Shown here piece by piece: positions 1,525 through 54,446 of a stretch of 64,000 nt of DNA. Location: positions 1 to 64,000 of the forward strand of contig RQSC01001302.1 in the NCBI GenBank assembly GCA_013416795.1. The letters are read 5' to 3'. The stretch comes from Prasinococcaceae sp. CCMP 1430 (lineage: Eukaryota; Plantae; Prasinodermophyta). Every line of letters starts with the position of its first letter. Position 1 is the stretch's first letter. Under the pieces are notes generated by a model. The model was given only the letters and a program-made list of their open reading frames with translations. It did not search any database and was not told the DNA's origin. A program made the position numbers and the translations under genes.

Positions 1525-2553
1525 AACAGCGCAGACACGTCGGCGAGAGTTGAGCGAGGTTTTTTGGCAGGGGGTGTCGGCGCTCTGTGTGCGCGGCTCG
1601 GCTCGGCAGGGCCCTTTGGGCTTCAGCAGCACGCATGCGGGCGGCGGCGCCTTAGGAGCTGTCTCGGGCGGATGAAGTCTCCACCACATTGCCAATCTTT
1701 ACTGTAACACACCTACTGTATGTCTTGTGTGTGCAGGATTGCCGCAGCGTCGCGGTCGCGTGCGTACTCTTCCCGCGCCTGCCTTTTTTTCCGCCTTTCT
1801 TGCCGGCCTTTGGCCGCCTGTGTCGCAACACCGCGGCAGACGATCTCACCGCGAGAGCGTTTTTATTTTTGGTACGCTCCAAAACGCCATCAAAAAGCAC
1901 GCATACCCGGCAACGCTCGAACGAACCGCACGCCTGCGCGGTCTAACAGGTGCCAAGATTCTCCAAGATTTTCCACGCTTCACCGGAGAGGATCACCCAA
2001 CAAGCCAACACGGATTTTTGAGAGTGTGACGTCATTGTTATGGCGCTGGGACACGTGGCTCCGCGGGACGTAGCAGAGCGCGTAATGAGCACTCCCTCAC
2101 AACGGGCTCCTGCGAAGCCTACACAGTCGTGCCAACGGCGCGTTCCTGTCCCTGTCCCCCCGCCACGCATGGTGCATGAGTCCCCCGTGGGTACGTCATC
2201 CGTCGGGGCGCATCCGTCGGATGCGTACGCCCGCTCAGCTCACGCCGCCGCGCCGCGACGCCGCAGCGGCCGCGGCCGTTCCCCGACGCGCGGTCGCGCG
2301 CGCGCAATTTTTCGGTTTGCCCGGCCTGGCGCTGTCGCGTGGTCTTGCACGCACGGCATGTGCTGCTGCGAAGGGTGCGATCACAGTGCGGCATGTGCAA
2401 GTAGGGCGTCCGAGGGATCGCCCCGAGGTGTCCTTTGGCGTGTTTGTTCTCGTCGCGGTGGGCGTGAGAGGGTGGGACTGCGGCGGGGGGAGGTTCGGGT
2501 GTGGATTTCGTTTTTTGTGTGGCGGTTGGGGGGACGGCCGCGGCGCGGCGTTC

Positions 2554-3773
2554 CACGGCGCCGTGGAACGGCGTCGCGCGGGCTTTGGGGTGTCAGGAGG
2601 GTTTGTTGGCGGCTCGAAGAGCGTGCGTGCAGACGTGCGACCTTCGCACGCCTGGGTTTGGGTTGGGACGGAGGCCTGCGCGCAGCGAGGCCGGCGCGCG
2701 CCCTCCCAAGGGCTGGTGCAGCGCGCCGGCGTCGGCGCCGGCCCCCCGGCCGGTGGCGCCTCCGGCGAGGAAGCATCCCCCTCCCCCCCACCCCTCCGGC
2801 GGCGAATGGCCGCGCTACGAGCTCGGAAGCGTGCGAGCGCGCGTGCTGGCGCGTGTCGGCGGGGCAGGAGACGAGACGTGGCGTGTGCGCGTGCGCGCGC
2901 GCCGGGGCGCACGCGCACGCGCGTGGTACGGGCGGGCCGGACGCTTTCTATCTCCCCCCAAATGTTCTCGGCCGGCCGCAGACGGCACGGCCCGCACTCG
3001 CCGTAGTGCGCGCGCGTGCCACAGCGCGCCGCAGGCGCGCGCGCGGCGGCTCGGCACCCCTGCCGCAGCTGCTCGCCCGCAGTCAGCCATGGGGAGGTCG
3101 TCGAGCGATGGGTTCTCGCCTGCGATCGCCTCGATGATCGCGGAGGAGGCCGGCGTGGAGCTCACTCCCGTGCTGGTCGCGGCGCTGGCCGCCAAGGCCA
3201 ACGAGGGGGCCAGCCACGTCGAAATGGGTGAGGGCGCGAGCGCCGGAGCCGCGCACTCGGCTCGCGCGCGTCTGCTGCGCAGCTCCTATTGCTGCGCGCG
3301 CGCGTGGATGGCCGCACGGATGCACGGGGCGGATGCGTGCGCGCGCGCTTGGCCGGCTGCGCGCGCAATGGTGGCGCTCGGCGCTGACGCGTGCGCGCAT
3401 ACGCCGCCTGCCCTCGACGCTCCTCTCCAGTCTCCCTCGCGAGAGAGCTCGGCGCACACTCGACAGGCAAGTCTGCTAGCATGAAGCTCGATTCGTTCCC
3501 GCCGGCGGTGCAGGAGATGCTCCTGGCCTTCGACCAGGACGGCGACGGCACGGTGGATCCCCATGAGATTGGGCGCGCTGCGGAGCTGTACCACCAGTCC
3601 AAGCAGAAGACCAAGCAGCTGGGTCGGCTGGTCTTCTTCCTGTTGATCATGCTCTTGCTCATGCTGGCGGCCATCACGGGCACGACCTTTGCGGTCGTGG
3701 AGCTGAGCAAGGAGACCCACACCTCGAGCGACGGCGTGACGACCGTCGCCGGCCAGGAGGGCGTGGTGGCCAA
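2554..3773 (+). repeat. Segmental duplication, near-identical to 18281..19674 (upstream region, exon 1, intron and start of exon 2)
   Basis: Direct sequence match at offset 15727 (offset 15901 after the extra intron copy). Only a few substitutions in exon 1 and one 55-nt complemented patch differ. Confidence 0.95.
3089..3773 (+). CDS. Paralogue B (3'-partial, runs into the N gap): exon 3089-3227, intron 3228-3430, exon 3431->3773
   Basis: ATG at 3089 (MGRSSSDG...), GTGAG donor at 3228, ctcctctccAG acceptor at 3430, and the frame is preserved into MKLDSFPP. It has an EF-hand-like loop DQDGDGTVDPHE and a hydrophobic helix LVFFLLIMLLLMLAAITGTTFAVV. Positions 3481-3773 are identical to 19382-19674. 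Confidence 0.75.
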
Positions 3774-4484
3774 NNNNNNNNNNNNNNNNNNNNNNNNNNN
3801 NNNNNNNNNNNNNNNNNNNNNNNNNNNNNNNNNNNNNNNNNNNNNNNNNNNNNNNNNNNNNNNNNNNNNNNNNNNNNNNNNNNNNNNNNNNNNNNNNNNN
3901 NNNNNNNNNNNNNNNNNNNNNNNNNNNNNNNNNNNNNNNNNNNNNNNNNNNNNNNNNNNNNNNNNNNNNNNNNNNNNNNNNNNNNNNNNNNNNNNNNNNN
4001 NNNNNNNNNNNNNNNNNNNNNNNNNNNNNNNNNNNNNNNNNNNNNNNNNNNNNNNNNNNNNNNNNNNNNNNNNNNNNNNNNNNNNNNNNNNNNNNNNNNN
4101 NNNNNNNNNNNNNNNNNNNNNNNNNNNNNNNNNNNNNNNNNNNNNNNNNNNNNNNNNNNNNNNNNNNNNNNNNNNNNNNNNNNNNNNNNNNNNNNNNNNN
4201 NNNNNNNNNNNNNNNNNNNNNNNNNNNNNNNNNNNNNNNNNNNNNNNNNNNNNNNNNNNNNNNNNNNNNNNNNNNNNNNNNNNNNNNNNNNNNNNNNNNN
4301 NNNNNNNNNNNNNNNNNNNNNNNNNNNNNNNNNNNNNNNNNNNNNNNNNNNNNNNNNNNNNNNNNNNNNNNNNNNNNNNNNNNNNNNNNNNNNNNNNNNN
4401 NNNNNNNNNNNNNNNNNNNNNNNNNNNNNNNNNNNNNNNNNNNNNNNNNNNNNNNNNNNNNNNNNNNNNNNNNNNNNNNNNNNN
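3774..4484. other. Assembly gap (711 N)
   Basis: Run of N. Confidence 1.
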
Positions 4485-4758: not shown

Positions 4759-6733
4759 ATGGCGGTGGCGCACGCGTTCGTGCAGCGTGTGGTCATGAGC
4801 GCACCGGCGGCGCTGAGCGCCTGCCTCGCGTTGGCAGCGGCGGTGCTCACGCCCGGCGTGGGCGCCGCGCTCGCTCTTCCGCCGCGCGGGCCGCTGTGGG
4901 CGCTCGCCGTCGCGTACGCCGGTGCGCGCGCAGGCGGCGCAGCCGCCGCAGCCGCGCGCGCGCCGCCGCTCGTTGGCATGCTCCTCGCAGGCGCGCTACT
5001 ACGCAATGCGGCGCCCGCGGCATCCGCGCTGCGTGACGGCATGCCCGCCGCGCTGGCGTCCTTCGCCCGATCGCTCGCCCTCGCCGTCATCCTCGTGCGT
5101 GCCGGCCTCGCGCTCGATGCTGGCGCGGTGCGCGCACTCGGTGGCGCGTGCGCGAGGCTCGCCGCGTTGCCCGCACTCGCCGAGGCTGCCGCAGCGGGCG
5201 GAGTGGCCTCCGCGCTCTTTGGCATGGACGCTGCGTGGGCCGGCGCGGCGGGCTTCATGCTTGCGGCCATCTCGCCGGCCGTCGTCGTGCCGGGTGCGCT
5301 TGCGCTCGCCGCCGAAGGCTACGGCGGCCGCGCGGATGGCGGCGACGTGCTCGCACTCGTTACGGCGGCCACGCCGCTCGACGACGCGCTCGCCATTGCA
5401 GGCTTTGGCACGTGCCTCGCACTCTCGAGCGCCGGCGCGGGCGGCGGAGCGGCCGCGGCCGCGCTCGCGCCTGCAAAGTTGCTCGCGGGCATCGCCTCAG
5501 GGATCGCGCTCGGCGGGGCGGTCGCACTCGCGCTGCCGCCCGACGGTGAAAGTGACAGCGTTGGCACCGACCGACCGGCAGAAGCAGCAGTAGGGGGATG
5601 GCGAGCGCGCTCGCGTGCGCTTGCGTGCGCCGCGCTGCACGGGGCGCGCGCCGCTCGCGGCGACGAGGTGGCGTCGCCGTCGGCGTTGGCGTCGGCGCGG
5701 TGCGCGCTGCTGTCTCTCGCCGCGCTGGCAGGAGTGCTCGCCAGCGCCGAGCTCGACTTTGGCGGCGCTGGCGCGCTTGCCGCGCTCGCGGCGGCCGTCG
5801 TCGCCTCGGCCGCGTGGGGCGGCGCCGCGAGCGACCCCACGCGCGCCGTCGCTGCACGCGCCGCCGCGCTGTGGAACGGTGCCGTCGGACCTTTGCTCTT
5901 CGGACTCGTAGGCGCCAGCGTCGACGTGGGCGTCCTCGATGGGACGACGGTTGCGCGCGGGCTCGCCGTGCTCGNCTCCGCCGCTGGCCCTTCCCGCCCG
6001 CTCGTACATGGCGGCCGTCGCCGCCTCGGCCGCGTGGGGCGGCGCCGCGAGCGACCCCACGCGCGCCGTCGCTGCACGCGCCGCCGCGCTGTGGAACGGT
6101 GCCGTCGGACCTTTGCTCTTCGGACTCGTAGGCGCCAGCGTCGACGTGGGCGTCCTCGATGGGACGACGGTTGCGCGCGGGCTCGCCGTGCTCGCCGTGG
6201 GCGCCGCCACGCGCTTTGGCGCCGTGATGCTCGCGACGACGCGGGCGCGCCTGTCTTCCCGGGAGCGCCTCTTCGTTGCCCTCGCGTGGATCCCAAAGGT
6301 GCGCGCGCGCGCGAGCGACTTGCCGTGCGAAAAGCACCAGAGGCTCTCTGCGCGGCACTGACAGGTTCTCGCCACCACCGACGCACCCATCGTGCAGGCG
6401 ACCGTGCAAGCCGCGGTCGGCGGCGCGGCGCTTGAGGCCGCGCGCGACATGGCAGAGAGGGCCGTGGCGAGGGGTGATGCGACCGCTGTTGTCGTCGCCG
6501 AGCGCGCCGAGGAGCTCGGCCTCGTCCTGCTCCAGCTATCAGTCCTGGCCATCGTGCTCACCGCACCTGTGGGCGCAATTGCCATCGCCGTGGGTGGGCC
6601 CAGGTTGCTGGAGCAGAAAGGGAGCGGCTGCGACGACGAAGAGGTGGGCGGGGCCACTGAGATCACAGCAAAATGCGACAGCGACGGTGCCCGCGAGGAC
6701 GGCTCCACCACATCCAGCGCGGAGCGGCTGTAG
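4759..6733 (+). CDS. Na+/H+ antiporter, SLC9B/NHA2-like (CPA superfamily); intron 6299-6397; true start may lie in the gap
   Basis: Motifs GMLLAGALLRN, LALAVILVRAGLALD, LAAISPAVVVP, GYG, TPLDD, LLFGLVGASVD, ERLFVALAWIPK|ATVQAAVGG and VLAIVLTAPVGAI match the NHA family. The GT..AG intron restores PKATVQAA. The frame is broken by a duplicated read overlap at the N at 5975. Confidence 0.8.
5790..6194 (+). repeat. 185-bp direct duplication (5790-5974 = 6010-6194) around the single N at 5975; probable scaffolding overlap artefact
   Basis: The two copies are near-identical at offset 220 and are separated by an N plus 34 unrelated nt. Confidence 0.85.
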
Positions 6734-17985: not shown

Positions 17986-18815
17986 GCGCCGCGACGGTGT
18001 GCGAGCATAACAACCGCAACGGGCGAGACGTCATTTGGCATGCGAGCGCCCGCGCGCGCGCGACGAACGAAACGCGGCGTTCCCCGACGCGTGCGCGCGC
18101 GCGCGCGATTTTTTGGCACCGCGTCCGATGCTCTTGCCTTTGGGGTGTGTGCCCGAAGGGCTTCCCCATGGCGTTCTGAGGGCGCCTTTTGACGTGTGCA
18201 CAGGATCGACGGCAAGAGTGGGAGGTGGGGCGAGGTTTGGGTTGACGGGCGCCGCGCCGCGACGCCGTGGCGTGGCGTAGCACGGCGCCGTGGCACGGCG
18301 TCGCGCGGGCTTTGGGGTGTCAGGAGGGTTTGTTGGCGGCTCGAAGAGCGTGCGTGCAGACGTGCGACCTTCGCACGCCTGGGTTTGGGTTGGGACGGAG
18401 GCCTGCGCGCAGCGAGGCCGGCGCGCGCCCTCCCAAGGGCTGGTGCAGCGCGCCGGCGTCGGCGCCGGCCCCCCGGCCGGTGGCGCCTCCGGCGAGGAAG
18501 CATCCCCCTCCCCCCCACCCCTCCGGCGGCGAATGGCCGCGCTACGAGCTCGGAAGCGTGCGAGCGCGCGTGCTGGCGCGTGTCGGCGGGGCAGGAGACG
18601 AGACGTGGCGTGTGCGCGTGCGCGCGCGCCGGGGCGCACGCGCACGCGCGTGGTACGGGCGGGCCGGACGCTTTCTATCTCCCCCCAAATGTTCTCGGCC
18701 GGCCGCAGACGGCACGGCCCGCACTCGCCGTAGTGCGCGCGCGTGCCACAGCGCGCCGCAGGCGCGCGCGCGGCGGCTCGGCACCCCTGCCGCAGCTGCT
18801 CGCCCGCAGTCAGCC

Positions 18816-21760
18816 ATGGGAAGGTCGTCGAGCGATGGGTTCTCGCCTGCGATCGCCGCGATGATCGCGGAGGAGGCCGGCGTGGAGCTCACTCCCGTGC
18901 TGGTCGCGGCGCTGGCCGCCAAGGCCAACGAGGGGGCCAGCCACGACCAAATGGGTGAGGGCGCGAGCGCCGGAGCCGCGCACTCGGCTCGCGCGCGTCT
19001 GCTGCGGAGCTCCTATTGCTGCGCGCGCGCGCTTGGCCGGCTGCGCGCGCAATGGTGGCGCTCGGCGCTGACGCGTGCGCGCATACGCCGCCTGCCCTCG
19101 ACGCTCCTCTCCAGCCACGTCGAAATGGGTGAGGGCGCGAGCGCCGGAGCCGCGCACTCGGCTCGCGCGCGTCTGCTGCGCAGCTCCTATTGCTGCGCGC
19201 GCGCGTGGATGGCCGCACGGATGCACGGGGCGGATGCGTCGCGCGCGCGAACCGGCCGACGCGCGCGTTACCACCGCGAGCCGCGACTGCGCACCGCGCA
19301 TACGCCGCCTGCCCTCGACGCTCCTCTCCAGTCTCCCTCGCGAGAGAGCTCGGCGCACACTCGACAGGCAAGTCTGCTAGCATGAAGCTCGATTCGTTCC
19401 CGCCGGCGGTGCAGGAGATGCTCCTGGCCTTCGACCAGGACGGCGACGGCACGGTGGATCCCCATGAGATTGGGCGCGCTGCGGAGCTGTACCACCAGTC
19501 CAAGCAGAAGACCAAGCAGCTGGGTCGGCTGGTCTTCTTCCTGTTGATCATGCTCTTGCTCATGCTGGCGGCCATCACGGGCACGACCTTTGCGGTCGTG
19601 GAGCTGAGCAAGGAGACCCACACCTCGAGCGACGGCGTGACGACCGTCGCCGGCCAGGAGGGCGTGGTGGCCAAGACGGGCCCCGTAGCGAGGCCGACCA
19701 AGCTGAGCAGCCTGCTTCCCGACAGCGCCTTCCAGTCGCTGGACATCTTCGTGGTGGACTCGCCGACGGGCGCGCACCTGGAGCTCAACGTGCTCGGATG
19801 GTACCGCGTGAAGCCCACCGACAGCATCTTCGACGAGTACGTCACCATCATCACCTTCTCGGGCAACATCAAGCTCAAGGGCGAGTCTATGCAGTTCGAG
19901 CCGCTGGTTGGGAACGCCTTCGTGGAGGCTGGCTTCGAGGTGCGCGCCGGCGGACGCAAGCTGCACGGCGTGTACGAGATCATCGGCCTCTTCAACTCGA
20001 TCGAGGAGTGGGAGGGCCTCGACGTTGGCGAGGGGCCGCCCATGTTCGGCCAGTCGGACTTTGTGATGGAGTACGACGTCTTCTACAAGTGCAACGACAG
20101 GTGCTACACCGAGGTCTTCGAAGACACCCTGAAGTCAATGGTAACCACCGAGGACGGCGACACCGCCGTAAAGATCTCGCGCACGGCGCATCACGACGTG
20201 CACATCGGCGCGGTGCTCGAGTACACGGTGAACCCCGAGTTTGAGTACAGCACCAAGGTGAGCTACATGGCTGCCAACATGAGCGTCGAGTACCAGCTGA
20301 GCGGCCTCAGTCGCCCACGTCTCCAAGGCATGATGACGTACCTTCTGCCGCTACGCACCGGCAGAGCCTCGGAGCCGCAGCCCGTTGTCGGGTCATTCAA
20401 CGTGAGCAACGCCACCAAGATTGGCGAGAGCTACGACGAGGTGACCGGCGTGACGATCCGCGAGTTTAGCATTGACGTTGGGATCAACGAAGCCGAATAC
20501 ATAATGCTCACTGATGGCGCCGAGCCAGGCGACGACTTTAAAGGCCTGTTGACCTTGACCTACTTTGACGAGAAGGAGAGCCTGCACCCGGTGAAGATGA
20601 AGATTGGCCCCAACATCACTATGGTGTTCAACACCTTCTACGAGGAGAGTGTCGATCTTGAAGACTGGCGCACGCCCAGCAACTGCATTGCGGACGACCC
20701 CTACGCCTCGCACACGCCCACTATGATGGGCGAGGATCCGTACATGTTCGATCACAAGCGCCGCAGGCAGTTGTCCGGCCTCGTGCCCGTGGAGAACTAC
20801 GGCGACGCCGCCAACGAGACGTACATCGCAAAGCCCTTCTACTTGCCTGACTGGTTCGACCCATCGTTCCCAGGCATTTTGTCGGACTACGACGACTACA
20901 CCTATGACTACGCGGATGACGGCGAGGCCGTGCGCCGCACCCTGAGCGAAATCGATGCGATCGATGCCGACCTCGCGCTCTTGCTCGGTGACTCACCGTC
21001 TGACATGCTGGATGACGAGTTTGCGGACGGCCCCGCGGCCCTGCGCGAGCTTGATTCGGCGTCTCAAGAGGTGAGGGCGCGGAGTCTCCTCGGCAGGAGG
21101 AGGAGGAGTCGGAACAAGAACAAAAGGAATCTGCAGTTTTTCAAGAAGGCGGCCAAAAAAGCGATGAAAAAAGCGGTTACCAACCCAACCACGCCTTATT
21201 GCCCGGACGATTGGCCAGCGGACACGTGCTATCCAGACTTAAGTCATACTGAGAAGGGTTGGCAATTCGGCAATTTCGAGTTTGAGATGCACACCTGGAA
21301 CGGCGGATGCTTTATCAAGGAGGCGAAGGTCTCCGGTGGCCGGTGCCCTGGTGGGGGCACGCTGTACGGGACCTGCAGTGGAACGACGCCCCTGCTCTGC
21401 CGCGGCAGCTGGGGCTTCCGCTGCGCCATCGGCTGCGAGTGGACCTTCGAGAACTTCCTCCCTAACTGGATCGTCAATGCTCTGAAAGGCGTTGGCCTGA
21501 ACCTGGACGCGACGCTCTTCGTCGAGCTCGGCTATTCGTACAAAAGTACCTTTGACCTCAAAGGCGGCGGCTCGATTGGCAAAATCAAGAAGGATTGGAC
21601 GGGCTGGACGAGTGGCGCCGAGGCAAGCTTCGAAGTACAGGGTAGCATCAACGTTGCTACCAGGAAGCTCGGGGTCAAGTTTGCCATCGGCGGCAAGGCG
21701 TGCTGGGGTGGGTGCGTCTCTCTGAGCTACACCGTGGTCGACCTTTCGCAGAGCTACTAG
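18816..21760 (+). CDS. Paralogue D (complete) of the EF-hand/TM proprotein family; exon 18816-18954, duplicated intron region 18955-19331, exon 19332-21760
   Basis: Same exon 1 and splice sites as B, followed by a long open exon with EF-hand, TM, RKL/RRQL/RRTL/RSLL/RNL sites and a Cys-rich C-terminal domain. Confidence 0.85.
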
Positions 21761-22506
21761 AGCAGCGAAGGGTTGGCAAAAGCTGAGTGAGTGACGGGCT
21801 GGGCAGCGGGTGTCGGCGCTCCGAGCGGCTTGGCGGGCCCTTGGGGTGTCGACAGCGCGCATGCGCTCGGCGGCAGCTGAGGAGCTGTCGTGGTGGGGGG
21901 AAGTCTCCGCAGTATTCCACGCAACTGAACATCATTATCTTATAATCTTCTTAGTGACTATAATATAATAATGACTATGCATCTTCCCCGCGTCTTGCCC
22001 GAGCACCAACGCGCCCTCTAGCCAGCAGCGACACCAGCCGACCGGGCCAAGCAAGCCAGGCCGCGTCGTCCGTCAGGGGAGTGGCGTGCGCGAACCCGGC
22101 GCTCCTGCCGAGGCCCGTCGGCGCGTGAACCCACCCCTCGCGGCAGGCGTGCGTCCTCCGCGCTCACGCCGGGCCGGGCGAGCCCTCCCCGTGCGCTCCC
22201 GTGCGACCTCGCAGGCGGTGAGACGACGTCGCAGGGTTTCTCGCAGGCGACGGAGGAACACACATCGATATGACACGCACATCACATGCCCTTTCGAAGC
22301 ATTTCCCAACGATCCTAATTTTCGTGGAGGACTTCCGCGAAATAGGGCCGTTCGGTTGGCTTTCATTGGTGGTTTTGAACCTGCGGTTCGGGCGGAGGGC
22401 CGTTCGGCGCTTGCGTTTTCGAGGCGGATCGCGATCCGCGCCCCGGCCGCGGCGTCAACAACCGACGGCCGCAGATCCCTGCGGCGCTGCGCGCGTGCAG
22501 CGCGGG

Positions 22507-22543
22507 GTGTGTGCGTGCGTGCGTGCGTGTGCGTGCGTGTGTG

Positions 22544-22587
<44 letters not shown>

Positions 22588-22662
22588 CGTGTGTGTGTGT
22601 GTGTGTGCGTGCGTGTGTGTGTGTGTGTGTGTGTGTGCGTGTGTGCGTGCATGTGCGTGTGT
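22507..22662 (+). repeat. (GT)n/(GTGC)n microsatellite, intronic
   Basis: Seen directly in the sequence. Confidence 0.95.
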
Positions 22663-23129: not shown

Positions 23130-23303
<174 letters not shown>

Positions 23304-44980: not shown

Positions 44981-45072
44981 CCTGACGCGCGTGGCGCAGC
45001 GCTGTGGGCGCAGGTGACAGCGCGCGCGGGGCGGCGGTGCCAGGGGCTTGGGGCTCAATGTCTTCTTGTAAT

Positions 45073-45123
<51 letters not shown>
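45073..45123 (+). repeat. Poly-G tract (51 nt)
   Basis: Seen directly in the sequence. Confidence 0.95.
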
Positions 45124-45124
<1 letters not shown>

Positions 45125-45463
45125 GGCAGCCGACGCATCGATGGGTGCAGGTGTGCAGCGTCAGATGCGTGGGCAAGGCGATGTTGGAGGCGTCGCACCC
45201 TCGCGCGCACCGCCAGGGGAGAGTGCCGGGGTGGCGCGCGGGTGCGGTGGGGTGCAGCACTGCGAAGGCCACGATGAGGGGAGGAGCGCACGCACCGCCT
45301 GCTGCCGCTGCCCCCGCCGCTGCTGCTCCTACTCCGCAGCGCGCGGCGCGCGCCCTGCACCGCCGCCGGCGCCGGACAGCACGCGCGGAGCTGAGTGCCA
45401 GGCCGCGGGGCCCGAGGCGGAGCACGCTCGGGGTCAGTCACTTCTCAAGTGGTTGCGGCCAAG

Positions 45464-50159: not shown

Positions 50160-50888
50160 GCCGGACTCGTACGCGACCTATGGACGCCCCACCATGACAG
50201 CAGGCGCGCGAGAACACGCACAGTGAGGGCCCGAGCCAAACAGACGAGCCCGCGGATGTATTGTCAGCGCAGTGGTCCGCCGCAGGCCCCAAGCAGCGCA
50301 GACACGCGACGGGCGTCGGGACCTCGGTGCAGTGCAGAGCGCGCGCGGGTGGAGCGCAAGAGGTGCCCGCGCGTGCGGCCGTGGTGGCCGCGCATGCCCG
50401 CACCATCCCAGCGTACGCCGCGCCTCCGGCGAGGCCACTAGAGGATTGCGTCCATCTCAGCGTTGTGCAACCGCAGGCCGGCTCGCGCGACTTTCACGCG
50501 AGCCGCCCGTGACGGCGCTTGCGCTCGCCGCCAGCCGCTTCAACAGCGCGGGAGGCTCGAAGGGCGGCATAGGCGCCATCGAGGCCGCCGCCAGCGCCCC
50601 GGCCAGCGGGGCGGCGCCGGGCGCGCCGCAGCGACTGGCAGCACCGCTGTGGCGACAGGGGGTGACGCCTCTTTTTTTCCCCCCCCGACGCCGGCTCAGA
50701 ACGCGCGACGCTCGCCAAACCGCGTCCAAGCGCATGTGCGAACCCTAAGGCGCATACCGGGGTAGATGGCTGCACTTTTCCCAACCTAAACCCGGTCTGT
50801 CGAGGACGCGGTGGACCCGGGCGGCGGAGGCGCAGGCACGGGCCCCGCATGGGTAGGCGCTACAGTGCGCGCGCGGAGCGTGCCTTCC

Positions 50889-50889
<1 letters not shown>

Positions 50890-50924
<35 letters not shown>

Positions 50925-51170
50925 ACGTGCATGCGTGTGTGCGTGCGTGCGTGTGCGTGTGCGCTCGCGCGCCCGTGAGCGCGCGGATGCGCGCGTGCGC
51001 CATGGCGCGGCCGGTGCGGCGAACGCGGGGCGTGCGGTGTGGTCCACGCACACACACACACACACACACATACACACACACACGCACACACACGCACACG
51101 CACGCACGCACACACGCATGCACGCACACGCACACGCACGCACGCACACGCACACGCACACGCACACGCG
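50890..51170 (+). repeat. Poly-C (35 nt) followed by (GT/GC)n and (CA)n microsatellites
   Basis: Seen directly in the sequence. Confidence 0.9.
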
Positions 51171-51965: not shown

Positions 51966-53396
51966 TCACCTCGCCTCGTCGGCCATCCTCTCGCGAATGT
52001 AAGCGTCGGTGTCCTCGACAGCGCCGCGCAGGGCGTCGAACAGCTCGTCGAGCTCGGCTTCAGTGATGATGAGCGCCGGCGACACGGCGATGATGTCGCC
52101 AACACTGCGTACGAGAACGCCGCGGGCGCGCGCCGCGTCGCCGCAGAATGCGCCCACCTTCCACTCGGCTGGAAAAGCCTCGAACCTGTCGGGGTTGCGG
52201 CTCCACTCCATCGCGCCCAGGAAGCCCATCGAGCGCACATTCGCAGCATAGGCCGACCCCTTGGCGGCGATATGCAGCCTGGTGTTGAAGCCGTTGGCCA
52301 TAGAGGCCACACGCCCAGGGAGGTCGCGCTCCTTGTATATCGACATGGCCTCGAGCGCGACCGCGCAAGCCACCGGATGTCCGGCGTAGGTAAAACCGTG
52401 GCCGAGCATGCCGATTTCCTCCGAGTGCTCGTCGATAGCAGCGGCAATTTTCGGTGAGATCATCGCCGCGCCGAGCGGCACGTACGCCGATGTGATGCCC
52501 TTCGCAAGCACCACTGCGTCTGGGTGCATGCCGACCGCATCGCTGCCGAACATGCTCCCCACTCGGCCAAAGCCGGTGACCACCTCGTCGGCGACCAGCA
52601 GGACGTCGAACTCTTTGAGCGTCTTCTGTACCGCCTCCCAGTAGCCCTGGGGGGGGATGATGACGCCACCTGCGCCCTGCACGGGCTCGGCCCAGAGCGC
52701 AGCCACGGTGTCAGGGCCTTCGTCGAGGATCCGCTGGCGCAGATCGGCGGCCATGCGGGCGCCAAACCCGGCCTCGGTCTCGCCGAGCTGGCGATGGCGG
52801 TAGAAGTCGGGGCAGCCGACGTGCACCACGCCGTCCATCGGCAGGTCGAATGACTTGTGCAGGTGCGGCAGGCCGGTGAGGCTCGCCGAGGCAAACGTCG
52901 AGCCGTGGTAGCCGCGGTCGCGCGCGAGCAGCTTCTTCTTGTTCGGTCGTCCAAGGGCGTTGTTGTAGTAGCGAATGAGCTTGACGAGCGTGTCGTTGGC
53001 CTCCGAGCCACTGCTGGTGAAGGTCACGCGCGCCATATGACTCGCAGTGTACATCTCGCGCAGCTCGTCGGCGAGCTTTTCGGCGGGGTTGGTCGCCATG
53101 CCCCAGAAGTTGTGGAAGTACGGCATCTCGTCCATCTGCTTCGTCGCGGCGGCCTTGAGGCGCGGCTCCGAGCCGCCGAGGAGGGTGGACCACAGGCCTG
53201 CCAGCCCATCCAGGTAGCGATCGCCCTTGTCGCTGTAGAGCATCACGCCCTCGGAGCGAGCGATGTTGAGGTGTGCCGAGCTACCGCCCACGGCGAAAGG
53301 CGTGAGATGCGAGCGGCGCGTGGCGGCGGCCGCCGCGTCCGCGGCGACAGGTGCTGCCTGCGACACCAGGCGCGTTGAGGATGCCCAGGACGCCAT
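51966..53396 (-). CDS. GABA-T: Gamma-aminobutyrate transaminase, plant POP2-type (class III aminotransferase), intronless
   Basis: Motifs YLDGLAGLWS.LLGGSEPRL, SGSEANDT, YYNNALGRPNKKK, YHGST, AEPVQGAGGV, ADEVVTGFGR, LAKGITSAYVPLGA and HGFTYAGHPVAC. Confidence 0.92.
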   Translation of the reverse strand: MASWASSTRLVSQAAPVAADAAAAATRRSHLTPFAVGGSSAHLNIARSEGVMLYSDKGDRYLDGLAGLWSTLLGGSEPRLKAAATKQMDEMPYFHNFWGMATNPAEKLADELREMYTASHMARVTFTSSGSEANDTLVKLIRYYNNALGRPNKKKLLARDRGYHGSTFASASLTGLPHLHKSFDLPMDGVVHVGCPDFYRHRQLGETEAGFGARMAADLRQRILDEGPDTVAALWAEPVQGAGGVIIPPQGYWEAVQKTLKEFDVLLVADEVVTGFGRVGSMFGSDAVGMHPDAVVLAKGITSAYVPLGAAMISPKIAAAIDEHSEEIGMLGHGFTYAGHPVACAVALEAMSIYKERDLPGRVASMANGFNTRLHIAAKGSAYAANVRSMGFLGAMEWSRNPDRFEAFPAEWKVGAFCGDAARARGVLVRSVGDIIAVSPALIITEAELDELFDALRGAVEDTDAYIRERMADEAR

Positions 53397-54446
53397 CGCG
53401 CCTCCGAGATCGCGGGATTCGAACCCACCACGCGCTGCCCTCCGCCTCTCGGTCGCCCGCAGCTGCTTCCCCCTTCCGCGGCCGCAGCGCCAGCGGATGC
53501 CCGCTGCGTGATTCGAACGCGCGCCGCCGCCCTCGGCGCGCTGCGTGCGCCGCGAGCGAGGCCGCGCGGGCAGCGGCGCGCGGGCGCGCGAGCCGGGGCG
53601 CGGGGGGCACCTGTCGCGCACTCTCGCGCGCTGTGCCGGACTGTCGCGAGCGGCGCGCAGCGCGTGCGCCTTGTGCCCCCCCTCCCCTTCTTGGCAGCGC
53701 CCCCGCCAGCGCGAGCGCCCGCGGCTCGCACACATGATGTCAAGCGTCCCCATCCCCCAAGAGAGCCCCCAACCCCAACCCCAACGCCACCCTCCCCGCC
53801 AGCGCTCCTCAGTACAGTATGTAAATGCACGCACGATGTGGATGTGTCGGCGCTTTCATAAACCCTACACAGAACCGAGTGTGGCGCTGCTCCCCGCGGA
53901 AGCGCCGCCGCGGCCGGAACATCTTCTTCAGCCGACCGTCAGATTCAGACGTACGCGCCGACGCGGTGGCACCCGACCGAACACGTGTTGGGGACGAATG
54001 GATCGGGATACCGCCGCATGTCGGGGTTGTGTGCTGAGGGGCCCGCGGAAAGGCCAGCGAGGCGGTTCGGTTCCGGAGTGCCCTTCTCCGTCCCCCCCCC
54101 CGCGGGGGGGGCACGCCGCGGCCGCGCGTGCGGGGGGGGTGCATCAAGCACCTCCGCGCGCACGGGGCGAAGCGCAGCAGCAGCGGCGGCGGCGGCGGCG
54201 CCCGCAGCAGTGGCTGTGAAAGCAGCGGGACCAGGGGGCGCAGCTGCAGAGGTACGGCGGGCGCAAAGCAGAGTGTGGAAGGAAGCACCACTTGTTACCA
54301 CGGGCTCGTACGAGTTCGTACTGCGAAGCGTACTTAGTCTCTGTCGCGCCCGCGGCCCACACCAGCGCCCGTCCCCATGCCGCCGACATGTTGATCCACG
54401 TGCGCGCACCACCACGTTGAGAAGTGCGCGTGTGCGCTAGCGCTAG

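Follow-up and report, generated by a model that had tools for sequence, protein, structure and literature searches.

The closest described relative of the structure reported here is the misassembly that repeats induce in short-read de Bruijn-graph assemblies, with its chimeric joining of paralogues, its contig overlaps left unmerged and its bubbles placed in series. The likeness lies in paralogues that share exact repeats exceeding k in length, in a chimera of two of the copies (A and D), and in breakpoints placed on branch vertices of the graph; within the same 20 kb there are also single-N joins, a 711-N gap and a duplicated overlap of 185 nt. An ordinary misassembly, however, delivers correct sequence in the wrong order or from the wrong copy. 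In the present case it is the k-mer at the junction that is abnormal: it has been complemented without reversal, a form with no chemical meaning.

A true inversion resembles the present case in its complementary letters, but inversion yields the reverse complement, while the patches described here keep their letter order. Errors in SOLiD colour-space data can likewise turn a run of bases to its complement, between two colour errors; such errors nevertheless predict all three letter swaps, at arbitrary lengths and positions, whereas here only the complement is seen, at 55 nt, on graph vertices. Natural mirror repeats (H-DNA, homopurine/homopyrimidine) offer a further comparison: set against the opposite strand of its paralogue, a patch is reversed and not complemented. 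Mirror repeats are, however, local, of low complexity and symmetric about a centre; a patch is complex sequence, and its copy lies 16-20 kb away, at the homologous position.

Two complemented patches in paralogue D

The window, by which is meant the whole stretch of 64,000 nt that was analysed, carries three members of the family. The 3' part of paralogue A occupies 1-1524; copy B, at 2533-3773, comprises the upstream region and the first 291 coding nt and then runs into the 711-N gap; copy D lies at 18261-21908. The features to which the argument refers are these:

19240-19294, no strand: patch 1, a same-order complement; when un-complemented it is a merge vertex (two predecessors) of the k = 55 graph
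3339-3393, + strand: the patch 1 sequence as it stands in copy B, in native orientation
19023-19077, + strand: the patch 1 sequence, again in native orientation, where it lies in the short-form intron unit immediately upstream
20310-20364, no strand: patch 2; when un-complemented it is a fork vertex (two successors) of the k = 55 graph
38-92, + strand: the patch 2 sequence as it stands in paralogue A, in native orientation
19240-20364, + strand: the 1,125 nt from the start of patch 1 to the end of patch 2; its comparable coding part (aa 13-328) is A-type, not D-type
19382-21760, + strand: paralogue D as an open reading frame, starting with MKLDSF and 792 aa long; as assembled, an A/D chimera that includes patch 2
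3774-4484, no strand: scaffold gap of 711 N, cutting copy B 380 nt past the native copy of patch 1
18937-19331, + strand: two tandem units, each an exon end plus a putative intron (short form 18937-19110, long form 19111-19331)

Patch 1 had been picked out in the sequence-only reading as a 55-nt same-order complement of 3339-3393 and of 19023-19077, and script comparison bears this out: complemented base by base without reversal, 19240-19294 equals both at 55/55 positions. The complement relation stops exactly at both ends. From there the sequence is simply identical to copy B, for 129 nt leftward (3210-3338 = 19111-19239) and for 380 nt rightward (3394-3773 = 19295-19674), up to the N gap. 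The two other window copies of the site agree with each other; copy D is the outlier. For the first 10 nt of the patch, (CG)5 against (GC)5, a 1-nt slip is an alternative reading; the other 45 nt are complex sequence.

A true inversion at patch 1 was considered and rejected, as the letter order is retained whereas an inversion would present the reverse complement; the reverse complement of the patch has no match above background in a search of the window against itself.

The patch lies about 90 nt 5' of the D start codon. The stretch that contains it has GT...AG boundaries and would link an in-frame upstream exon, so that it is plausibly an intron, to judge from these sequence signals. The motif GCTGAC, a putative branch point, is present in both normal copies, and CGACTG stands at the same place in the patch.

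A scan for same-order-complement matches had also been proposed. Here the window was searched against itself in both letter orders, forward and reversed, for identity and for each of the three letter swaps. Homopolymers and microsatellites apart, the scan returned exactly one further complex case: 20310-20364 is the same-order complement of 38-92, again over exactly 55 nt, with 37 identical bases on its left that reach to the window start. The other complex same-order-complement matches in the window reach 15-17 nt at most, and in five simulated sequences of the window's length and composition (first-order Markov) the longest were 16-18 nt. Against that background a complement match of 55 nt excludes chance. 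Under the A<->C/G<->T and A<->G/C<->T swaps the window holds no complex blocks, only microsatellites. Both patches in the window are therefore of one constant length, and that length is a plausible k.

Patch 2 falls inside a coding exon of paralogue D, where the conserved TAGAEVPYYCMEDGDAWPS is replaced by SRPRLQGMMTYLLPLRTGR. The motif TA(G/D)AEVPYYC..AWPS, or a close variant of it, occurs in 16/16 related proteins that cover the site, and the patch translation in none; at this site SRPRLQGMMTYLLPLRTGR belongs to window D alone. When 20310-20364 is un-complemented, the conserved residues return in window D. A window D protein with the patch translation is absent from the protein collection, in which gene models may differ from the one used here.

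Graph vertices, independent sequence and the D gene

One way to ask what fixes the patch ends is to consider the window as a de Bruijn graph. Both patches were un-complemented in silico, and the window 55-mers with more than one predecessor or successor were listed. Of the 63,946 window positions, just 43 start a branching 55-mer; 19240 is one of them, and 20310 another. The vertex at 19240 is preceded by T at 3338 and at 19239 and by C at 19022; the vertex at 20310 is succeeded by G at 93 and by A at 20365. Patch 1 is the first 55-mer common to three copies after they diverge on the left, its right end being set by length alone; patch 2 is the last 55-mer common to A and D before they diverge on the right, and here it is the left end that length alone sets. 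With one patch anchored at a merge and the other at a fork, the two provide independent estimates, and each gives k = 55.

The chance that both 55-nt blocks start on branching vertices is about 4.5e-7 when the whole window is considered, and about 2e-5 when the calculation is limited to the D copy (18 branching starts in about 3.6 kb). The affected vertex instances in the paralogue copies number 2 of about 32; the error is therefore conditional, for example on orientation or on the type of join.

Sequence assembled by others allows both sites to be read independently. Five contigs were used: L001 and L002 (SRR22824304 and SRR22824306), L004 and L005 (SRR29950796 and SRR29950795), and L003, a Tara metagenome scaffold. 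Identity to the window copies is 93-98%; the DNA that bears on patch 1 is 94-97.5% identical and comes from close relatives, not from the same strain. All five (5/5) have the native orientation at patch 1, including L004 and L005, which share the long intron form of copy D; at patch 2 the native orientation is again found in 5/5. In a k-mer comparison, matching of these contigs to the window by complement only was confined to the two patches. JGI metagenome contigs, searched with S/W-code patterns that fit native and complemented forms alike, gave 0 matches for patch 1 and 0 matches for patch 2.

Two EukProt proteins, P0010 and P0006, match this strain. The first equals window A at 505/505 residues; the second reads the un-complemented translation through patch 2. 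Upstream, P0006 and the window disagree at six sites, which means that the protein has a source other than this stretch of the assembly and amounts to an independent reading. The strain-matching evidence thus concerns patch 2, at the protein level; patch 1 is backed from outside by close relatives, and also by a signature identical to that of patch 2.

The same two proteins reveal that the D gene is composite. Residues 13-328 of window D are identical to the A-type P0010 at 316/316 positions, and to the D-type P0006 at 311/317. Directly after patch 2 the affiliation is exchanged: residues 329-792 match P0006 at 464/464 positions and P0010 at 316/479. The flanks of patch 2 come from different paralogue paths, A-type up to 20364 and D-type from 20365, and the deposited D gene is an A/D chimera whose switch point is the patch 2 boundary. 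The sites at which P0006 departs from the window are residues 107, 253, 256, 260-261 and 270; by this protein comparison, the true D sequence is predicted to differ from the deposited one at these residues. The D protein has an EF-hand-like N-terminus and one hydrophobic stretch, and matched no Pfam family.

Origin of the patches

These observations are best accounted for by supposing that the patches are a software artefact, produced either by a short-read de Bruijn-graph assembler run with k = 55 or by the scaffolding or gap closing that went with it; we put the probability of this at about 0.93. The sequence-only reading had already suggested a k-mer or gap-filling bug with a k of 55, a suggestion now supported by the location of both patches on branching 55-mers, by the wrong-paralogue segment and by the native state of independent sequence. 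Paralogues A, B and D are closely related copies sharing exact repeats longer than k; in resolving them, the program would have put the 1,125-nt piece at 19240-20364, A-type in its comparable coding part, into the D locus; the piece would have been joined to its neighbours through two 55-mers, the graph vertices at its ends; and these two overlap k-mers would have been output as plain complement in place of the correct sequence. One possible route is that a stored reverse-complement k-mer was reversed without being complemented; alternatively, a 2-bit word may have been inverted without being reversed.

We infer that the cause lay in the join step of a k = 55 assembler. A junction k-mer that is complemented but not reversed points to a coding error in the sequence output, something beyond the choice of a wrong path. 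Literature phrase searches found no published account of a complement-without-reversal artefact or of such an assembler bug, and searches for the SRA and Tara accessions likewise yielded nothing relevant.

A different perspective would locate the fault in the letters themselves, without reference to any graph. In two-base encoding a sequence and its complement share the same colours, and one wrong colour flips the bases that follow until a second error occurs. Reasoning from this code, a complement block requires just two colour changes, one at each boundary; under other encodings, complement is the bitwise NOT of the common 2-bit code. A colour-space (SOLiD) slip, or some other slip of encoding or decoding that took no account of graph structure, could in this way yield complement blocks, and a slip of the colour-space kind was indeed among the causes put forward in the earlier reading. 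It should, however, yield the other two letter swaps equally often, and in the window these are limited to microsatellites; it should yield blocks of variable length, and both patches have 55 nt. A decoding slip also gives no reason for ends on branching 55-mers or for a wrong-paralogue segment alongside. With the other swaps absent and the patches seated on graph vertices, we do not favour this explanation and regard it as very improbable. A graph-independent edit of the file after assembly, by a faulty patching, polishing or format-conversion script or through a deliberate or accidental change, ranks above such a slip and is still decidedly unlikely: edits blind to the graph would place both patches on branching 55-mer vertices with a probability of only about 4.5e-7, and would not bracket a paralogue-switched segment.

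The remaining alternative is that the DNA is really so, 55-bp blocks having been replaced by their same-polarity complement through parallel-strand copying at recombination junctions between paralogues. Presence in the deposited assembly is the sole support for this. To our knowledge, no chemistry of replication, repair or recombination copies a strand in parallel polarity, and the lack of any such known chemistry weighs against a real rearrangement from the start. Nor would biology be expected to produce two events of identical length, both on k = 55 vertices. A real patch 2 would destroy 18 conserved residues, yet the strain-matching protein has the normal ones, and all related contigs are normal at both sites. 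The mirror-type rearrangement of an unknown kind that had been envisaged earlier accordingly receives no support from the independent contigs or, at patch 2, from the strain-matching protein, all of which are native. We regard a biological origin as improbable in the extreme; the patches are not a biological feature.

If the artefact arose in assembly, as we hold, it has consequences for users of the sequence. A public assembly contains letter-for-letter complements of the true sequence at places where pieces were joined across repeats. Such patches damage gene models silently: in the present case a conserved protein has 18 residues exchanged, and a putative intron signal disappears. The patches are, in addition, flags for chimeric joins between paralogues. 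Odd features encountered in this assembly should be checked against the complement-patch error before anything else is made of them, and the signature (a same-order complement of k nt, on a branching k-mer) could serve as a simple screen for other assemblies produced by the same program.

The paralogue family and the rest of the window

Relatives of the D protein were found only in marine metagenomes, in Logan assemblies of SRA runs and in EukProt. There is in addition a weak partial match to a protein with a PRCOL_ locus tag, which we take to denote Prasinoderma coloniale. The DNA probably comes from a GC-rich (67%) marine green alga.

The 711-N gap shows that the assembler left the paralogue family unresolved. 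Past the gap there is a different reading frame and a different gene. As the sequence beyond the gap belongs to a different gene, the number and order of the paralogues are not fixed by the assembly.

Another mark of a troubled assembly is the tandem pair of units upstream of D. Copy B and 5/5 independent contigs have one unit only; window D has two. The short form, at 18937-19110, resembles the A-type Tara contig, and the position of patch 1 is the exact point at which the short and long tandem forms rejoin. The pair is probably two alternative graph paths placed in series. Spliced as a 14-nt mini-exon, the tandem unit would disrupt the reading frame.

The upstream exon (...ASHVEM) is in frame, across the putative intron, with the sequence before MKLDSF (19111-19385 and 3147-3485). 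This arrangement suggests that the real protein may carry an N-terminal extension, like its 907-aa relative P0003. The database models P0001 and P0002 start at MKLDSF.

Five single-N joins occur in the window besides the 711-N gap. A 185-nt sequence stands on both sides of the N at 5975, as direct duplicates at 5790-5974 and 6010-6194 with 99.5% identity; this is typical of contig ends whose overlap was left unmerged. A complement patch in the 34 nt after this N was tested and rejected; what is found there is the ordinary duplicated overlap.

Simple sequence is also present. Runs of G and C homopolymer, about 35-50 nt long, lie at 45072-45126 and 50887-50924, and long (TG)n/(CA)n microsatellites at 22537-22645, 23130-23303 and 51048-51124; the single-N join at 23248 interrupts one of these microsatellites.

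Elsewhere in the window, an intact class-III aminotransferase is encoded at 51969-53834 on the - strand, and no patch was seen within it. Its best named relatives are pyruvate-dependent GABA transaminases of land plants and streptophytes, at about 50% identity, and it is 99% identical to a Logan contig, L006, from SRR29950795.
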